Below the pieces are notes generated by a model, which was not told the origin of the DNA, made no database searches, and saw only the letters and a program-made list of their open reading frames with translations. Below are positions 1-60,620 of a stretch of 64,000 bases of DNA, piece by piece. Source of the stretch: Mantamonas sphyraenae STR306 (taxonomy: Eukaryota; Protista; CRuMs); assembly GCA_026936335.1 (NCBI GenBank), contig JAPMXV010000044.1, forward strand, positions 62,001 through 126,000, given 5' to 3'. Made by a program: the position numbers and the translations under genes. Each line of letters begins with the position of its first letter. The stretch's first letter is position 1.

Positions 1-1038
1 GTTGGGATCCAAGGCCACCACCTGTCGCAGCTCGTCCAGGCTGCGTTCCAGGTTGCCGGCCTCTTGCAGGGCCCCGGCGAGCTGGTAGCGGTAGGTTGGA
101 TCGGGAGAAACCTGGACAGCACGTTCGAAGCAGGCCACCGCGGCTTTGTAATCGCCGAGGGCACGATAAGCATTTCCCAGGTTGTTGTGTGTGTTTGCTT
201 GTTGCGGATCCAGCTCGATGGACTTTCGAAACACACGGACGGCGTCACTGTGTTGGCCCAGCTGGGCGAGCAGATTGCCGTAGTTGTACCACGTGCGTCC
301 GTTGGCACTGTCGAGGTCCAGTGCCCGCTTGTATGCATCACTGGCCTCTTGGATGCGGCCAAGGTTCTTGAGGGCCGCCCCTCGGTTGGCGTGTGCATCG
401 GCAAAGGTGGGACGCAACGCAAGCGCCTGGTCATAGTCTGCCACAGCACGAGGCAGTTGGTTGAGCATGTGCAGGATGGTACCACGCATAAAATAGTCCA
501 GAGACAGGCTGTGTTTGCCCTGGTCGGACGAGAGGTCAAGTTCACGTCGGTGGAGGGCGACAAGAGCTGTGTACGAGTCGACTGCGGCGGCATACCTGCC
601 TAGGATACGCTGGGCCGTGGCCAGCTTGGCCAAACCAGGGGAGAAGGATGGAGCCAGGCGTCGCACTTCTTGCAACGCCGCCTCTTGCTCCGCGTGCTTT
701 CGCTGGCGTTCGTAGACGGAGGCGAGATGGAAGTGGCCATTGGGGTTGTTTGGATACAGGCGCGTGGCGTCCTGGGCACACACCAGGGCGGCGTCGAGGT
801 CGTTGGCGTTAAACAGACGCACTGTTTCTTGGAGGAGGGCCTGGGCGTCAACAGATCCGGCGGGCCGAGAAGCAAGGGCGGCGCAGAGGACACCTCGTGC
901 GCGGCCGTGCGAGTGGCTAATCTTTGTTTTGGCCTTTGCGGCAGCCCGGCGCAAGGTGGGGCGTGCGTGCACGTGGTGCAGAAGCACAAGCAACACAAGG
1001 AGCAGATGGAGGTGGAGGAGTTTGCAGCGACGGGACAT
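1..1038 (-). CDS. Signal-peptide TPR-repeat protein, 5' part only (runs off the window edge); probable OGT-like paralogue
   Basis: Absent from the ORF track because it has no stop in the window. Hand translation from ATG 1038 is open to position 1: MSRRCKLLHLHLLLVLLVLLHHVHA|RPTLRR..., then canonical TPRs (e.g. ADAHANRGAALKNLGRIQEASDAYKRALDLD, ANTHNNLGNAYRALGDYKAAVACFERAVQVSP). Confidence 0.85.
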   Translation of the reverse strand, partial: MSRRCKLLHLHLLLVLLVLLHHVHARPTLRRAAAKAKTKISHSHGRARGVLCAALASRPAGSVDAQALLQETVRLFNANDLDAALVCAQDATRLYPNNPNGHFHLASVYERQRKHAEQEAALQEVRRLAPSFSPGLAKLATAQRILGRYAAAVDSYTALVALHRRELDLSSDQGKHSLSLDYFMRGTILHMLNQLPRAVADYDQALALRPTFADAHANRGAALKNLGRIQEASDAYKRALDLDSANGRTWYNYGNLLAQLGQHSDAVRVFRKSIELDPQQANTHNNLGNAYRALGDYKAAVACFERAVQVSPDPTYRYQLAGALQEAGNLERSLDELRQVVALDPN

Positions 1039-3004: not shown

Positions 3005-5590
3005 ATGTCGCGCATGACCTCAGCGTACAGCGTCACATCGCGCAGTCGAAGGCCACAGAGTAGTGGAAACAGGAACAGCAGCAGCAGCAGCAGCAGCGGC
3101 AGCGTCGTGGGGGACCGTGCAAGACGCGCAGGAACATCGAAAATGGTTGAATTTGCAAACGTCAACCGAGTGACACCTGTCAAGAAGAGGGACTTTTTGA
3201 CGCTCAGCGTGAGCTACCGCATTTCTGGGGAGCCTCACTTGTACCGGTGGACCAATGAGCTGCAGGTGCATGTGGATCCGCCTCAAAACAACGCGTTTTT
3301 CGCGTTGGTGTTTGGGGAGCAGGAGGGCGAGCAGGAGGCCCAGCAAACCAGGCAGAGAGAAGCGTTGGCAGAGATGCTGGAGCAAGCGCGCAAACGTGTG
3401 GTGAGTGTCGAGCGCCAAGAGCACGTGGACGTCGACTCGCAACGCGCGTCGAGTGGGCAGGAGCTTCAGGAGCTGCAGGAGAAACTTGAGAAGTTGGCGG
3501 AAATTTCCGCACGACCCGTGTCTGACGGGTCGCTCTTGGAAGAGTTTTTCCAGCATCGAGTGAGCGGAGAGCGCACTCTGTTTGCAGCTGCACACGTTGC
3601 CTTTCTTCACCGGGACGGGACACCCGTTGCAATCTGGGAAGAGAAACAACAGTTTGCCGGTGCGTCCGAAGCCCACTTTGGCACGTTTGCGCTCAACATG
3701 AACGAAGCGTACAGCGTGGTGGTGTCCCTGCGCTCTCCAGATATCGAGAGCATCGAGAGCATCATGATCAACGAGGTGCCGCTGGCGATTGTGGAGCACA
3801 AGAGGCGGATCCACGGGCACGCGGTGCTGGTCTCCTTCGACATGGCGGACTTTTTCGACTTTGCCTGCGTGGATGCAGAGCACGAGTTTGAGAAGCACAC
3901 TGTGGTGAAGCCTGCAAAATGTGCTCTTTGCCAGGGGCCTGTTTGGGGCATGTTTTCCGCAGCTCAGCAGTGTGTGCGGTGTGATCGACTCGTGCACAAG
4001 GATTGCGTGAAGCATGTGCACAACGACTGTGGTGTGGACATGCTCACACAGCCGCTGAAGCTCAAGCGGCTTGTGTTGCCTGGCCAACGCGTGAAGAAGG
4101 TTGCGGTGCCAGTGACGCTGGATCGCAACGGCAGGGACGAGGAGCAGTGGGTAGAGGACGGTGACGTGCATGACACTGCAGATGATGATTACACATCCAG
4201 TGAGGACGAGGCTTCCGTGGATGAGACCGAGGTGTATGTCAACGCGCAGGAGGACGAGGAGAACAGCGTGCTCAAGTCGCATGCGATCCAGGACATCATC
4301 AGCAACACGCTGGTTCGTCAGTTTTCACAAGAGAACATGATGAGTGCGCTGGGGCAGACAAAACGACACGTGGAGACGAGTATGGGAGGATCGTCATCGT
4401 CGTCGGCCTCGTTGTCGTCTGCCTCGACCCCATCTCCCTCAACAGTATCGCCTCACACTCGATACTGGAACAGCGCCGCGTCACGTCTGGGTCTGCACTT
4501 TGACGAGCTGTCGCCCATGGTGCGATCCATGGAGGGAGTGCGGATTCGCGGGAGGAGTGAGAGCACAGCTAGCGCATGGAGCGAGACGGAACGCAAGGTG
4601 ACGGTGATGATCATGTTGGATGACATCACAGAGAGGCGCACGGTGGATTTGGCCAAGGAGAATCCGAACAAGGCGGTGTGGCAGCTGGTGCGGGACTTTG
4701 GAGAGGTGTTTGTCGACGAACATGTGCAGGACTGGGAAGGAAACCACCCGTTTGGCTACTTTGTGCCAAAGGGAAACAGCCAAAAGAGATGGAAGGAGCT
4801 GAAGGAGGCGGCGACTCGTTCGACGCTGCAAACGTCTGTGGGTGTGTGGCTGGAACCGAAGCGGACGCTGTTGGAAGAGGAGGCGCTGCTGCGAGACGGC
4901 AGCGTGATTGTTTTCACCAGCCAGGTTTTGTTTGTGCGAGATAAGCAGCACAAGCTGCGAACGACAACATTGACCAATCCGCACAACTGTGGCCACTGCA
5001 ACAAGTTCATTTGGGGACTGGTCAAGCAGGCCAAGCGATGCGACGACTGCAACTTTGTGTGCCACCATGCATGTGCAGAAAACGCAGAAGCAAACTGTTT
5101 GCTGTGGGAGATCAAGTCGCACGAGGGTCGAGGGCACCAGGAGGTCTTTGACTTTCTTCAGCGCTTTGACCCGTCCGCCATCCGCAGACTAGAGTCTTCG
5201 TCTGGGCGATCTAGCCCCAATGGAGAGGATGGAGATGAGAAAGTGAGCAACGAGGCTCTGGACCTGGCAGAGGCGGTGGTGAGGATCCAGACTGGATGGC
5301 GGATCCATCGAGCGGCGAATCTGATGCGGCGCGTCAAAGCACGTGCTCGGCGTGTGGAGCAGCTGGCCGACGAAGAAGGTGGCCTCAGCGATGGAGACAG
5401 CACAGACAGCAGCCCTGTGATGGTGCTGACGGAGGAAGTGGGGACAAAGTGGGATGCCGAGGAGGATCATGCGGCACGTGTGATCCAAGCCGCTTGGAGG
5501 CTTCGTGGAGCCATCCGCAGGACTCGGGACATTGTGTACGCGGCTGTACAGCGCCAGTACGAGCTGGAGTCGCTGGCACAGGACGATTGA
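3005..5590 (+). CDS. Protein with two C1 (DAG/phorbol-type zinc finger) domains and two IQ motifs
   Basis: C1 domains HEFEKHTVVKPAKCALC...C..C...VHKDC...C and HKLRTTTLTNPHNCGHC...C..C...CHHAC...C. IQ-like motifs RIQTGWRIHRA and VIQAAWRLRGA. Single long ORF. Confidence 0.8.
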   Translation: MSRMTSAYSVTSRSRRPQSSGNRNSSSSSSSGSVVGDRARRAGTSKMVEFANVNRVTPVKKRDFLTLSVSYRISGEPHLYRWTNELQVHVDPPQNNAFFALVFGEQEGEQEAQQTRQREALAEMLEQARKRVVSVERQEHVDVDSQRASSGQELQELQEKLEKLAEISARPVSDGSLLEEFFQHRVSGERTLFAAAHVAFLHRDGTPVAIWEEKQQFAGASEAHFGTFALNMNEAYSVVVSLRSPDIESIESIMINEVPLAIVEHKRRIHGHAVLVSFDMADFFDFACVDAEHEFEKHTVVKPAKCALCQGPVWGMFSAAQQCVRCDRLVHKDCVKHVHNDCGVDMLTQPLKLKRLVLPGQRVKKVAVPVTLDRNGRDEEQWVEDGDVHDTADDDYTSSEDEASVDETEVYVNAQEDEENSVLKSHAIQDIISNTLVRQFSQENMMSALGQTKRHVETSMGGSSSSSASLSSASTPSPSTVSPHTRYWNSAASRLGLHFDELSPMVRSMEGVRIRGRSESTASAWSETERKVTVMIMLDDITERRTVDLAKENPNKAVWQLVRDFGEVFVDEHVQDWEGNHPFGYFVPKGNSQKRWKELKEAATRSTLQTSVGVWLEPKRTLLEEEALLRDGSVIVFTSQVLFVRDKQHKLRTTTLTNPHNCGHCNKFIWGLVKQAKRCDDCNFVCHHACAENAEANCLLWEIKSHEGRGHQEVFDFLQRFDPSAIRRLESSSGRSSPNGEDGDEKVSNEALDLAEAVVRIQTGWRIHRAANLMRRVKARARRVEQLADEEGGLSDGDSTDSSPVMVLTEEVGTKWDAEEDHAARVIQAAWRLRGAIRRTRDIVYAAVQRQYELESLAQDD

Positions 5591-55141: not shown

Positions 55142-57759
55142 TCAGGGTTTGCCCTGGCGGATGACATTGGCCATCGCAGTAAAATTGTTGCTCTTGATGG
55201 CAGCGCGGCAACCGGTGGTGACTGCGGTGCGTGCTTCGCCAACACGCAAATTGCTGGCCATTTGGATGATCTGGTTGACGTCCTTGAGACACTTGAGCAG
55301 CGCCTCGTGGTTGTTGCGTCTCTTGTTGTACTCGGCCATCAGTTCGTGGTTCAGGTCATACAGAGTGCTGAAGCAGTTTTTCATGGCCTCCATGTTGCCC
55401 AGCAGTCGCGCGTCCTCTGCCTTGATGACCATCATCTTCAGAAACTGCGAGCGGTCCGCCATGTCCGCCGTCAGCTTCTGGCGAACTGCATTAAAGTTAT
55501 TCACATGGCCCAAGACCTCCTCCAGTTCGGCGAGGGTATCGGGGAAGTCTGCCTCCGATTCCAGATTGCTGATGTTCAGATCGCGGCACAGCGAGTTGAC
55601 AAGTTCCCCAGCAATGGCCATGTCATTGGTACGCAGCGTCATGACGCCGTTGTCACCCGTCATGTGCATGTGGATCATCTGCGACTCTTCCGTGAGGTGC
55701 TGGAACACCACGTCCAGACTTCCGGAAGGCAGTTTCTCCGTCATCACAAAATTGTTTTCGATCCACATGATCACGCGGTTGACACGGTCGTGCACATCAA
55801 ACACCACCGAGTTTGTGGGCAAATCCTTCTGCTGCACGCTTCCTCGTTGCATCAGCGACCAGTTGCAGAATCCGGGCACGTCTTGCTGGCGTTCGAATAC
55901 TGTGAACGACGTGGCGCCACGCATGCCCACGAGCACCTTGACCGCAACCGTGCCACCTGTCGTGCCCTTCAGTGACACTGGGATCATCACCTCGTTTGTG
56001 GGATTCAGAGGATGGCTGCGGGGCGAGTCAGTGAGCCGCTCTGCAATTAGCGCACGACGACGCAGATCCACTTACATCACAATTGTGTCGCTGTGCAGCA
56101 CGTTGTCCGACTCGAGCACTACTGATTTGACAATGGTGCTCGACGTGGACGCAATCACCATGTCCACACGACGTTCGTTCTGCCAAATCCGTGTCAGCAT
56201 CGCACACGGCACACACACAAACACACACACACATACACACACACACACACACCACTTACGTTGTTGATGCGCAGCTTGCACGACACCTGCGTTTGCTTGG
56301 GAATGCTTCCCGCTTCCAGAGATTCGCCGTTCTTGGCCTTCTTGAGGCCGACTTCATAGGTCTGCAGTTCATACAGCAGCTCCTGCTTGCGCTGGTTCAG
56401 CTCCGACAGCGTGTTCTCCACCAAACTCTCGTCCATAAGGTTGCTGCCCATCTGCGCCTCGGCAGGCAGGTAGCCACGCACCTCACCCTCGTACGAGCAG
56501 CAAACAACTTCCAGGTTGCCGTCGAGGCGATAATCTGCCTCCACAATGGCGCTTACCGACGAACTAAAGTGGTCCTTGAAAACAATCTCGCCCGACGTGT
56601 CAGACAGAACCTGCAGTCGTCCGTTGGACCAGCCGGCGATGAGTTCGGGCTGGCCGTCGGCGTCGAGATCAAAGCCGCCCAGCGCAGTCACCTCGTGCTT
56701 GTACTTTTTGCGCCACACGTTCTTCTCCTTGTTGTACACGCCCACTGTGCCGTTGATCAGGCCAAACCCGTATGTGGTGTGGCGCATGCCGCACAGGGCG
56801 ACAATTGCTTCCGTTTCGTGGATCTCCGAAAACACCTCCTCCCCCTGGAAGATGCGAATATCAAAGTCCTCTGAGCCCACCAGTAGCTCGTACTGTCCGT
56901 CTTCATCCACGTCCAGCAGCTCCAACGACGTGACGTTGTCTCCCGTGAGCGTCCAGAACGCCTCCTCGCCCTCGGCGTCGTAGCTGGAGGTGTGTGTGTG
57001 TGCACATGTGTGTGAGCGAGGTGCTTCTGCGCATGTGTAGATGTACATGCGCATATGTATTTGCGCATGGAAGTGGAGGAGCAAAGGCTGCTTGTGCGAG
57101 GGTGTGCCTGGGAAACGCACCCTTGGATGGAGCAGTTGCCGCCAACCACAATCAAGGGCGTGGCAACGTCACCCACTCGGCCCACCACGGCCTGGGCCAC
57201 GCCGTCGTTGACGTCGCGGTAAAACACATCTGAATTCTCCTGCACGTCATAGCTGTGTGTGCGCAGGATGCGTGTATGCGCGAGTGTGTGTGAGGGTGAA
57301 AGTCAGCAAAACGGAGGGCCTTTTGGCGCCATCGCCCCTCGAAAACGCCGAAACGCACGCCAGCAGGTTGGATTCGCTTCCCACAAACAGTGTGTCCCTG
57401 CCCTCTGTGGCACCAATGTCGCCTGCCACCAGCCCCGTGACATTTTGGTTGATGTTGAGGAAGCGCACGGCCTGTTCTTCGTGCGGGCTGTGCAAGAACA
57501 CGCGCCCGCCTGTCGTCGCACATGTCAGACTCGGGTGCTCGCCATCGTCTGTGGGTCATTCACGCGTGGGTAAAGGCAGCGGTGAAGCGCGTCGTCACGA
57601 TTCAAACCGGAATGTGAGCAAGAGGGGTGGCCCATCCAGATCCCGCCCACACTACTTCCCCTCTCATCCACGCCACTACACAAACGTACACTTGCCCACA
57701 GTGGCCAAATCCGTCAGGATTTTGTTGTTGACGAAAAAGTTGAAGCAGGGAATGAGCAT
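55142..57759 (-). CDS. BBS2: Bardet-Biedl syndrome 2 protein (BBSome), about 5 introns
   Basis: MLIPCF...VGK|YDGEHPSLTCATTGGRVFLH, VGGNCSIQG, ELLVGSEDFDIRIF, ELIAGWSNG and ASNLRVGEA...CRAAIKSNN. Confidence 0.93.
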
Positions 57760-57816: not shown

Positions 57817-60620
57817 ATGCTCCGACGAGCGCACGCACACACCGTCGTCGTGTGCGCTCTCGTTGTACTTGCAGTGGCTCTCTTGCTCCCTGCGGCTGAG
57901 GGGAAGCCGCAGGTGCGCAGGAAAGCCTCCGCCAGTGCGCGACGACCGAGGCCCACACCAGCGGCAGCAAACACAGCCTCACACTCACACAGAGGCAACC
58001 AGAGGTTGCCAGCATATCTAAGCCAACTAGGAGACTTGACCACACGCAGCATGCAGCTGCGGTCCGACTCGGTTTGCGCCGGATTCGACGCAGCAAGCAT
58101 GGATGTCAACGCAATCTTGTGGGTGCCCTCACACGAAACCCTCAACGACCGCACACCCACTCACACACACGCACACATATCCACAGCGCCAAAGGAACCA
58201 CACTGAGACAGCAAGGACAATGGGATGCAGCGCTTGCATGCCTGGAGCACACGGCACGTTTGGCTGGGCCTGTGCCGCAAGTCTATCTGGGCATTGCCGG
58301 CGTACTAAAGGGAAGACAGCAGTATGAAGACGCCATTGCTGTATACGTGTCTATTTTGCTGCACATGGATGGTGACAATCGTGTGTGCATGGTCAACCTG
58401 GCCAACACGCTCGTGCAGATGCGTCGGTTCACTCATGCCGAGCCCGTGTATCGCCACGCCATTGCTGCACACCCAGAATGGGACCAGCCGCAACTGAACT
58501 TGGCCGCCATGCACGCCACACAGCATGCCTATGACAAGGCATTGCCTGTGTATCGTCAGCTTTTACAGCGTGACCCGGGTCACGCTGAGGCCCTCTACGG
58601 CCTTGGCACAAGTCTGTTCCATCTGCGAGACTACACCGCGGCTGAATCGACTTTGACCTCGCTTCTCAAGCAGCATCCGCGCCATGCAAACGGACTCGCC
58701 CAGCTGGGGGAGGTGTACAATCGGTTGGGACGCCTTGAGGACGCCGTTGCCCTGTATTCCTCTGGTCTAGCCTTCCATCCCAAGCCACATATGCTCCACT
58801 ACAAAATGGCCGTGTGCTACAAACAGCTCAATCGCATCACAGAAGCACTGCAAGCCTTCAATCGCTCCGTGCAACTGGACAACACGTTTCATCCGGCATT
58901 GTTTGGCGTAGGAAACACGCTCAGCCGTCTCGAGCGCTTCGAAGAAAGTGTCCCTGCACTGTTGCGCGCTCTGCGTGCCGATCCCAATCATTTGGCAACC
59001 TGGACCCATGTGCTCAACGCGTTGGCCAACCTGTGTGCGTGGAACTCGGAGAATGCCGAGCTGCGTGCTCTCACAGACATGGTGGCGGCCACACATCCGC
59101 TGAAAGGCTTCTCTGCGTTGGACGTGACATCTCGTCGGGCATCGTGGGCCTCGGTGGACAGCAGCCTGGAGACCAAGCTGATGCCTGTGGCCCGCGCTCT
59201 GCTGGCTCAGCAACTGCACCAACCGTTCGACACCGACCATCTCAACCCGTTCCTCAGCCAAATGTTTCTCTTCACCGAGGAGGACTGTCTCGCCGTGGCA
59301 CGCAAGCGCGCACAACATGCGTACGACGCAGTCCCTGCCGAACGTCGCCTGTACACGTACACAGGAGACACACGAGACATGCACGCAGCACATGCAGCAG
59401 CGCAACAGTCCCTGAGCACGTGGAAATCACGACACGGAAGTGCAGCCACGCAGACACTGCGTGTCGGATACATGACGGCAGACTTTGGTGCCCACCCGAC
59501 CGGCATCATGATCAACAGCATCTTTGCGTCGCACAATCGCACAAGAGTGGCCGTGTGGTGCTATGGCACTGCGAGCAGTGATGGTTCGACCGTGTACGAA
59601 GCAGCGCGACGAGGATGTGCCACCTTTGTGGACTTGAGCACCATGAGTCTGCCGCAGCAGGTGCAGCGTATCCGCAACGACGGAATTCACGTGCTCATCG
59701 ACCTCAACGGCTACAGTGGTCAGGAAAAGTTGCCCGTGTTGGTGCACCAGAGTGCGCCCGTGCAGATGAGCATGCTTGGGTATCCTGGCACCACCGGCGC
59801 ACACTACGTCCACTACTATCTCAGCGACGCACGGGCCACACTACCCCACACGGCTGCACACCAGTTTGCAGAACACATGCTCATGACTCCAAACACCTTT
59901 TACATTTCGAACCACGCCGTCACCTCGCCCCAGTTCGCCGACGAGGAAAGTGTGTCTGCAGCAGCGCGTGCCGATCGCACAGCCATGGGTCTCCCAGCAC
60001 GCGGTGCCACCCACGGCAATCACTTTGTCTATTGCAACTTTGGACGCATGTTCAAGCTCGACCGTGCCACGTGGAAGGCCTGGATGAGTATCCTTCGTCG
60101 TGTGCCCGGTTCCGTCCTGTGGCTTCTTCAGTATCCTGCCGAGTCGATGCCCCGGTTGCGAAAAGAGGCAGAGCAAGAGGGGATCGAGGCCAGTCGCCTT
60201 GTGTTTTCGCCCCTGACCACAAAGGAGGAGCATGCCAAGCGAGCGGCTGTCTGTGACCTCTTTCTTGACACACCCATGGTCAATGCGCACAGCAGTGCCA
60301 CAGATGTCCTCTGGACCGGAGTACCCATTGTCACCGTCGCCCTGAGCGACAAGTTTGTGGCTCGCCTGGCCGGTTCGCTGATGGTCTCTTTGGACGCTCG
60401 CGACCTGGTGGCTCGCGATCTGCAACACTACACAGACATTGCCGTGCACATGGCCACAAAGCCATCTTGGTACGCCGACATGCGCTCGCGCATTATCCGT
60501 GCGCGCATGACCTCACCCCTTTTCAACGTTTCCCACTGGTGTGAGCAGTTTGAACACATGCTGGCCTTAGCGTGGGAGGTGTTTGCCGCTGGTCGCCCAC
60601 CCATGCACATCGTCGGCTGA
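57817..60620 (+). CDS. GT41 O-GlcNAc-transferase-like protein (TPRs plus catalytic lobes) with an N-terminal signal peptide, 1 intron (~58062-58186)
   Basis: About 8 TPRs; LRVGYMTADFGAHPTG, DGIHVLIDLNGYS, APVQMSMLGYPGTTG, FVYCNFGRMFKLD and DLFLDTPMVNAHSSATDVLWTGVP. Hydrophobic leader VVVCALVVLAVALLLPAAEG. Confidence 0.9.

Follow-up and report, generated by a model that had tools for sequence, protein, structure and literature searches.

Organization of the Locus

The DNA analyzed here is a stretch of 64,000 nucleotides from the 25-Mb genome of the protist Mantamonas sphyraenae STR306 (78 contigs), comprising positions 62001-126000 of contig JAPMXV010000044.1 (G000:C44:62001-126000) and termed the window. 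Positions 57817-60620 of its forward strand hold a gene for a protein composed of tetratricopeptide repeats (TPRs) and a glycosyltransferase domain of family GT41, the family of the O-GlcNAc transferase OGT and of SEC and SPY. The protein begins with a hydrophobic leader that has the anatomy of a signal peptide, and the leader recurs in other GT41 genes of the genome, which extends the finding from one gene to a family of paralogs. The genome holds ten highly diverged GT41 loci; the nine besides the window gene (C2, C3, C7, C13, C30, C36, C44a, C49, and C70) all exceed the PF13844 cut-off. The gene model comprises the following elements.

57817..58118, forward strand: exon 1 in the favored model, followed by the donor GTGGGT at 58119; the exon tail aligns with the intronless C36 and C44a
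58119..58186, forward strand: intron of 68 nucleotides, phase 2, GT..AG and in frame, with a CA-rich 3' tract ending in CACAG
58062-58186, forward strand: alternative intron of 125 nucleotides with its 5' end at 58062, donor GTCCGA, GT..AG and in frame; exon 1 would then end at 58061
58187..60620, forward strand: exon 2 including the stop codon, 810 codons from 58188, none of them an internal stop

The ATG at 57817 is the earliest in the open frame of exon 1, which runs into a stop at 58204. The TPR-GT41 frame is open to 60620 and gives 810 residues when translated from 58188. Behind the acceptor at 58186 the next in-frame ATG of exon 2 is found only ~58 codons further on, within the TPR array, so that an upstream exon and a splice are needed for the long frame. 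An earlier reading made from the sequence alone (the sequence-only reading) had placed the intron at 58062-58186; the in-frame GT..AG splice is retained here, and its 5' end is moved. The donor at 58119 is more likely than that at 58062 because it is nearer to GTGAGT, the donor of the homology-pinned intron of C7 (agreement at five of six positions), and because the residues it retains align with intronless paralogs. These 19 residues give a favorable comparison with three paralogs (ungapped BLOSUM62 sum, +15 vs. -35), with 4-5 identities in 15 to C36 and C44a. The head of exon 2 aligns without gaps to the first TPR-like helix of the intronless C13, C36, and C44a. Searches and fold prediction were run on exon 1 and exon 2 separately, by coordinates.

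The 3' ends of introns in this genome carry CA-rich (ACACAC/CGCACAC) tracts ending in CACAG, as seen at window 58140-58186 and before exon 2 of C30, C49, and C3. Translated in frame they appear as Thr-His repeats heading stop-to-stop frames and form a useful mark of acceptors.

Domains, Fold, and Catalytic Residues

Exon 2 encodes the whole of the enzyme, and its features are placed as follows.

58191..59093, forward strand: TPR superhelix of ~9 repeats (18 helices, exon-2 residues 2-302), from Pfam TPR families; pLDDT (predicted local distance difference test) above 90 in the AlphaFold2 (AF2) model
59448..60617, forward strand: GT41 catalytic domain with a GT-B fold, N and C lobes and a short inter-lobe linker, from PF13844, human OGT and Foldseek
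59481..59501, forward strand: HP motif DFGAHPT; His436 (exon-2 numbering) is the counterpart of the human OGT "H498" histidine, in a nearly invariant column
60030..60056, forward strand: donor-loop motif YCNFGRMFK; Lys623 (60054-60056) corresponds to human K842
60267..60305, forward strand: DTPMVNAHSSATD, with the pattern DTP..NAHSS.TD, corresponding to human H920, T921S, T922S and D925, with Val at the C917 position

The exon-2 protein matches PF13844 (Glyco_transf_41) in two stretches with an E value of 1.2e-94 and 318 bits against a cut-off of 25, and TPR_1, TPR_2 and further TPR families of Pfam match at 1e-29. No GT61 (PF04577) match is present among its Pfam matches. Human OGT is the best of the solved relatives (2.7e-115, and 9e-84 for its catalytic domain alone), followed by XcOGT from Xanthomonas (1e-54) and Arabidopsis SPY (1e-42). 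The AF2 model, built on an alignment of 40 sequences, has a mean pLDDT of 87 and a pTM (predicted template modeling score) of 0.83 and shows the 18 TPR helices leading into a two-lobe Rossmann-type domain. The top 35 matches of a Foldseek search against the PDB are all human or Drosophila OGT, with E values down to 3e-40 and TM scores of 0.63-0.67 by query and up to 0.78 by target; XcOGT reaches 0.89 by target. SPY is a weaker match than OGT by sequence and by fold. By domain content, fold, and catalytic residues the window protein is an OGT/SEC-type GT41 enzyme, and the sequence-only reading, which had seen TPRs, an intact GT41 region, and an OGT/SEC-like rather than SPY-type C lobe, holds on each of these points, down to the three motifs it quoted.

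Equivalents of human K842, K898, H901, H920, D925 and the HP-motif histidine are all kept, with serine replacing T921 and T922. Among the 40 aligned sequences Lys623 and Asp706 are invariant, and His436, His682, and His701 are nearly so. As the UDP-binding and catalytic residues are preserved, the enzyme should be active with a UDP-sugar. Differences from human OGT occur close to the catalytic residues (N838G, Q839R, L840M, Y841F, and C917V). The replacement of FNQLYK by FGRMFK, from which altered donor specificity had been proposed, is real and confined to the window paralog; eight others have N-x-L-Y beside the catalytic lysine, C36 has G-T-L-Y, and the canonical sequence is N-Q-L-Y. An altered donor is possible in the window paralog but would be no property of the family. 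The C917 position holds Val in the window gene, Tyr in seven other paralogs and in two sequences of the bacterial group, Phe in C3, and Cys in C7. The lobes are separated by ~35 residues compared with ~120 in human OGT; the intervening domain of animals is absent, as had been noted, yet a short linker is likewise found in plant SEC and other protist OGTs and is no peculiarity of this protein. The catalytic domain contains N-glycosylation sequons, among them N-R-T and N-V-S.

The Leader of the Window Gene

Two elements precede the TPR array.

57817..57903, forward strand: predicted signal peptide of 29 codons, with an n-region charge of +2, a 16-residue apolar core, and the c-region P-A-A-E-G
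57904..58020, forward strand: [KR]-P-x-[VLTI]-x-[RK]-[RK] motif (KPQVRR, 57904-57921) followed by a basic, acid-poor linker rich in S/T/A/P, defined from an alignment of eight paralogs

The signal-peptide call follows a manual rule (basic n-region, apolar h-region, polar c-region, small residues at -3 and -1). In the window gene the core consists of Val, Leu, and Ala, with Pro at -5, Ala at -3, and Gly at -1, and the KD10 maximum is 3.52. A hydrophobic first exon with n/h/c regions and an A-x-G site ahead of KPQVRR, as first described from the window, is thus present, and seven other paralogs share the architecture. Characterized OGT, SEC, and SPY have no leader for targeting to the endoplasmic reticulum (ER), whereas the window protein carries this signal-peptide-like leader of 29 residues. 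A mitochondrial presequence was ruled out, the segment being a contiguous Leu/Val-rich apolar core with no amphipathic helix.

Ten Paralogs and a Shared Leader

Nine of the ten GT41 genes have a clear signal-peptide-like N terminus, and the tenth, C3, has a less certain one. Leader, TPRs, and GT41 domain lie in a single uninterrupted open reading frame (ORF) in C13, C44a, and C70 (899, 995, and 915 codons, respectively). These intronless paralogs run from leader to stop in one frame and are hence free of assumptions about gene models. C36 has a single ORF for leader, TPRs, and N lobe and a different frame for the C lobe, and in C30, C7, C49, and C2 a matching leader is found just upstream on the same strand, as a separate exon or in another frame. 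Two of the intronless genes are placed as follows.

L021:4258-7002 (G000:C70:71257-74001): C70 GT41 paralog, an uninterrupted 915-codon ORF from signal peptide to KDEL
Window 1..1038, reverse strand: 5' part of the C44a GT41 paralog, with its ATG at window 1038 and a signal peptide followed by RPTLRR; the remainder lies to the left of the window
L017:3055-6039, reverse strand: full C44a ORF, 995 amino acids, uninterrupted, with a Pfam GT41 match at 6e-97

Eight leaders are followed by a KP-type junction, in which the predicted cleavage site leads into the invariant [KR]-P, then a hydrophobic residue, a dibasic pair, and a basic stretch. The manual rule is satisfied by the window gene and by all eight KP-type leaders. 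Their apolar cores are completely diverged; the n-regions carry a charge of +2 or +3, and all eight leaders have A, V, or S at -3 and G, A, or S at -1. The charge-bounded uncharged run measures 14-19 residues in five of the eight and 23 in the window gene. The net charge over the 25 residues past the leader is +4 to +8 in the eight paralogs vs. -6 to +1 behind seven other signal-peptide-like ORF starts. None of the latter, which are non-GT41 starts taken from the same DNA, has the [KR]-P...dibasic motif, so the module is specific to GT41 genes and no general trait of the secreted proteins of the organism.

Conservation of the leader architecture among paralogs means that exon 1 is no modeling artifact. 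The upstream hydrophobic ORF could in principle be a chance or unrelated frame attached to a GT41 pseudogene, and apparent 1-nucleotide frame breaks in related genes (C36, C2, and the O-GlcNAcase gene OGA described below) show that either the assembly or the genes have flaws. Against this, the 810-codon frame is intact, its catalytic residues are conserved, the fold is predicted with confidence, and a single leader architecture in eight paralogs is beyond chance; we regard artifact or decay as highly improbable.

The C termini differ. C70 ends in KDEL and C36 in KTEL, and the window protein ends in MHIVG, with no tail of the KDEL type. The paralog best qualified as a candidate ER-lumenal enzyme of the OGT type is C70.

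Two paralogs have unusual joins. In C2 (L020 reverse strand, oriented nucleotides 3541-3860) the leader ORF, which continues into KPKINRR, overlaps the start of the TPR-GT41 frame in another frame; the overlap is a proline-rich stretch of low complexity and could be a short intron or an assembly indel. In C36 (L014 reverse strand, oriented nucleotides 5080-5330) the frames of the two lobes are separated by just a few dozen bases, a gap in which no GT..AG intron of fitting length is obvious, and it is the C-lobe frame that ends in KTEL.

Phylogeny and Homologue Searches

A maximum likelihood tree (LG+C20+F+G4) was computed from a set containing no animal OGT or SPY sequence. All ten paralogs fall into the eukaryote-type superclade (support 100/99), separate from one sampled group made up of unnamed and bacterial sequences, and outside the clade of 20 canonical SEC/OGT sequences (89/94). 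A GT41 phylogeny had been suggested as a check on the OGT/SEC-like assignment; the eukaryote-type placement stands, and membership in the canonical clade does not, so that the window gene does not group as a SEC/OGT orthologue. The branches of the paralogs, which we take to be ancient and fast-evolving, are long (1.0-1.7 substitutions per site, the window gene 1.7), whereas most canonical OGTs have branches of 0.1-0.6. That the ten share a single origin is neither supported nor contradicted. As judged from this tree, the genome is without a canonical OGT.

In the catalytic domain the paralogs are 31-37% identical to one another, no higher than their identity to plant SEC and to oomycete and brown-alga OGTs; for the window protein the identity to plant, oomycete, and brown-alga OGT/SEC is 32-38%. 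No relative above ~45% identity was found in any collection searched. The word search with the full exon-2 protein was dominated by TPR words and was restricted to the catalytic domain of C13, which returned only relatives at 40-45%; an exact-sequence look-up of C13 gave no record. A large representative library held nothing above 34% identity, with giant multi-GT41 proteins leading the ranking. Metagenomes scanned with the window protein yielded no relative, and those scanned with an alignment of C13 and the environmental sequence P0100 yielded 80 distant loci, none of them close. P0100 is the sole outside sequence that groups with a paralog (C13, support 94/90).

L032:1-3168 (JGI metagenome 3300060877, contig Ga0589555_0056933): P0100, environmental GT41 sequence

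Its hydrophobic N terminus stands behind a poly-Lys run, the start having probably been mis-called, and Phe replaces the HP-motif histidine. A hydrophobic N terminus is rare among roughly 340 homologues inspected in all, few of which have one (about 3 of 146 in the word search, 1 of the 150 top hits in the representative library, and 0 of 41 metagenome loci).

An Animal-type OGA without a Canonical OGT

The genome also encodes the enzyme that removes O-GlcNAc.

L022:1424-3468 (G000:C30:397122-399166): animal-type bifunctional OGA, with a GH84 NAGidase domain (6e-54) and a GNAT-like tail

The gene starts right at the catalytic motif GFYGRPW, and no leader exon was found upstream of it. Its best matches are OGAs of sponges, cnidarians, and a choanoflagellate at 34-40% identity. 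The first piece and the remaining 649 codons are joined by an apparent 1-nucleotide frame break near L022:1480-1500 with no intron, which could be an assembly indel or early decay.

The presence of OGA implies cytosolic O-GlcNAc and hence some cytosolic GT41 activity. Possible ways of settling the mismatch are a cytosol-facing anchor in some paralogs, leaderless isoforms from internal starts, or an OGA gene that is itself decaying. The second of these would have exon 1 present in some transcripts only, with an internal promoter or a later start giving a leaderless cytosolic enzyme and the secretory form perhaps a minor product. The leader does stand on a first exon of its own in the window gene, C30, C7, and C49 and in an overlapping frame in C2, and exon 2 of C30 has an in-frame Met immediately ahead of its first TPR. 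The OGA gene would likewise fit a cytosolic transferase, and the human isoforms ncOGT, mOGT, and sOGT, all from one gene, provide a precedent (mOGT, PMC4901358). Three paralogs, however, have no intron between leader and enzyme and cannot lose the leader by choice of exon, and the first in-frame ATG in exon 2 of the window gene falls inside the TPR array. Dual products of this kind appear to us a distinctly unlikely explanation.

Membrane Side of the Enzyme

The reading we hold to be probable is that the window gene encodes a functional GT41 enzyme with a cleavable ER signal peptide that works in the secretory lumen or beyond and not in the cytosol; the localization is a prediction. Entry of an OGT-type enzyme into the secretory pathway had been proposed from the window gene, and it gains support from the leaders on nine of ten paralogs, from the -3/-1 pattern throughout the KP-type leaders, and from the KDEL of C70. 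A cleaved signal peptide is favored over an anchor by the basic n-regions, by the short uncharged runs of five leaders, and by the -3/-1 rule. Most tellingly, the KDEL of C70 and the KTEL of C36 point to the lumenal side. The genome has a gene for a KDEL receptor, and its calreticulin likewise carries a C-terminal KDEL, which indicates that KDEL is a working ER-retrieval signal in this organism. At least five loci encode nucleotide-sugar transporters of the SLC35A type, which would bring UDP-sugars into the lumen. Two kexin/furin-type convertases, each with Peptidase_S8 followed by a P domain, could cleave after the dibasic pair.

G000:C45:304698-305969: kexin/furin-type convertase, Peptidase_S8 then P domain
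G000:C33:210730-212123: kexin/furin-type convertase, Peptidase_S8 then P domain

In the predicted pathway signal peptidase would cleave behind A-E-G. The TPR superhelix would bind extended Ser/Thr-rich stretches in secretory cargo, like OGT with its substrates, and the catalytic domain would add one sugar residue from a UDP-sugar donor, UDP-GlcNAc being the simplest candidate. The basic N-terminal module may serve as a short kexin-type propeptide or as a sorting or retention determinant in the paralogs without KDEL, the window gene included.

Several observations weigh against a lumenal location. The flank behind the hydrophobic segment is strongly basic, and the positive-inside rule favors the cytosolic side for such a sequence. 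The uncharged run of the window gene, at 23 residues, is long enough for a membrane span. The basic stretch resembles a nuclear localization signal, and the window paralog is without KDEL. A leaderless OGA gene is kept, and no clearly leaderless GT41 gene was found. The use of the first ATG and the splice between exons 1 and 2, the latter supported by comparison, are inferred.

The charge, the long run, and the OGA mismatch would all be accommodated by a membrane-tethered cytosolic OGT, in which the leader is an uncleaved N-out/C-in reverse signal anchor like those of microsomal P450s or the Tom20/Tom70-type anchors. The [KR]-P...RR sequence would then be a cytosolic halt-transfer flank or one resembling a nuclear localization signal, and the TPR-GT41 part would sit at the ER or nuclear envelope, exposed to the cytosol or nucleoplasm. 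The net charge of +4 to +8 sits directly C-terminal of the hydrophobic run in eight paralogs, as this arrangement asks, and cytosol-facing enzymes would settle the mismatch with the leaderless OGA. The n-regions, on the other hand, are themselves basic, and the charge-bounded runs in five of the eight leaders are short for a stable span. Wholly diverged cores that nevertheless keep the -3/-1 pattern are difficult to explain for an anchor, and a KDEL or KTEL tail is sensible only on a soluble lumenal protein. We consider tethering unlikely.

In most paralogs the region past the predicted cleavage site, with many basic and few acidic residues and an abundance of S/T/A/P, also recalls the transit peptides of apicomplexans and chlorarachniophytes. 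In that case a signal peptide followed by a basic, hydroxylated transit-like peptide would form a bipartite signal directing the enzymes to a complex plastid or another organelle derived from an endosymbiont. LytB and GcpE of the plastid methylerythritol phosphate (MEP) pathway were not found in the genome with control genomes positive, and a plastid-type bipartite leader was rejected as unlikely on this ground. The +1 residue is not aromatic, the affinities of OGA are holozoan, and the KDEL of a paralog points to the ER, so that any bipartite signal is very improbable.

Returning to the secretory reading, a wider form of it would have the entire GT41 repertoire relocated to the secretory pathway. 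The ten TPR-guided enzymes would then make up a lumenal system of protein O-glycosylation that is not known from any organism, with at least one member resident in the ER by its KDEL and others sorted or processed through the [KR]-P...dibasic module, each TPR domain choosing its own class of cargo and no conventional cytosolic OGT left although OGA persists. We put this forward tentatively and regard it as rather doubtful.

Comparison with Known Glycosylation Systems

Textbooks present OGT and its relatives as the prime example of glycosylation that takes place outside the secretory pathway, and the lumenal O-GlcNAc of animals is made by EOGT, an unrelated enzyme of family GT61. To our knowledge, the biochemically studied eukaryotic GT41 enzymes (OGT, SEC, and SPY) all act in the nucleus, cytosol, or mitochondria. 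The statement of the sequence-only reading that characterized GT41 enzymes are nucleocytoplasmic overlooks the mitochondrial isoform mOGT (PMC4901358). A literature search found no report of an ER-lumenal or KDEL-bearing GT41.

The window protein resembles OGT and SEC in combining a TPR superhelix with a GT-B domain, in keeping the catalytic Lys, KEEH, and H-[ST]-[ST]..D, and in having the short inter-lobe linker of SEC, and it is matched best, in sequence as in fold, by human and fly OGT. It differs in its signal peptide and basic module, in its long branch outside the canonical clade, in GRMF for NQLY and Val at C917, and in belonging to a set of ten paralogs instead of being a single conserved gene. 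In human mOGT an alternative first exon places an N-terminal organelle-targeting/membrane segment before a shortened TPR array (PMC4901358). It is the closest known case of a GT41 enzyme with an N-terminal targeting exon, but its leader, a mitochondrial presequence, belongs to one isoform of a cytosolic enzyme. The Mantamonas leaders have n/h/c anatomy, are constitutive in three intronless paralogs, and are joined by a KDEL tail in one.

Functionally, EOGT comes closest: it is soluble, resides in the ER lumen, carries a signal peptide and a tail of the KDEL type, and puts O-GlcNAc on secretory proteins. It matches the role predicted for the window enzyme but has the unrelated fold of family GT61 and no TPRs. 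Lumenal TPR domains act as substrate selectors in TMTC1-4, which are O-mannosyltransferases of the GT-C class, and TPR-guided lumenal O-glycosylation is, as far as we know, the work of GT-C enzymes only. TMEM260, named in PMC10214176, is likewise a GT-C O-mannosyltransferase with lumenal TPR domains. TMTC1-4 and TMEM260 are multi-pass proteins using dolichol-phosphate-mannose, whereas the window enzyme is predicted to be a soluble GT-B protein using a nucleotide sugar.

GT41 enzymes have been listed in the predicted secretomes of Saprolegnia parasitica (three), Achlya hypogyna (two), Phytophthora ramorum (one), and Phytophthora sojae (one) (PMC4316629, table 3), and brown algae have about ten GT41 genes per genome, some groups of which are distant from characterized OGTs (PMC11468063). 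In these two studies a secretory location is neither remarked upon nor tested, and they describe no KDEL-bearing GT41 or conserved leader module. The oomycete and brown-alga enzymes are not close to the Mantamonas paralogs, which reach at most ~45% identity to anything found.

If the secretory reading is true, the TPR plus GT41 design has been recruited for the glycosylation of lumenal or extracellular proteins too, which would add to the known routes of O-glycan initiation in eukaryotes, and the paralogs would be natural OGT variants fitted to an oxidizing compartment. An OGA gene in a genome from which canonical OGT is missing is an evolutionary puzzle.

Genomic Surroundings

GT61, the family of EOGT and of xylosyltransferases, is expanded in this genome, with 13 matches at no fewer than 12 loci (e.g. 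C40:69268-71656). A search for GT60 (PF11397) gave no match, and its positive control was silent too. The upstream neighbor of the GT41 gene is the following.

Window 56194-57559, reverse strand: BBS2 (BBSome subunit 2) gene with introns, PF14783 at 6e-37

The presence of BBS2 indicates that the organism forms cilia or flagella. BBS2 starts on the opposite strand at a distance of ~250 bp from the GT41 ATG, suggesting a shared divergent promoter region.

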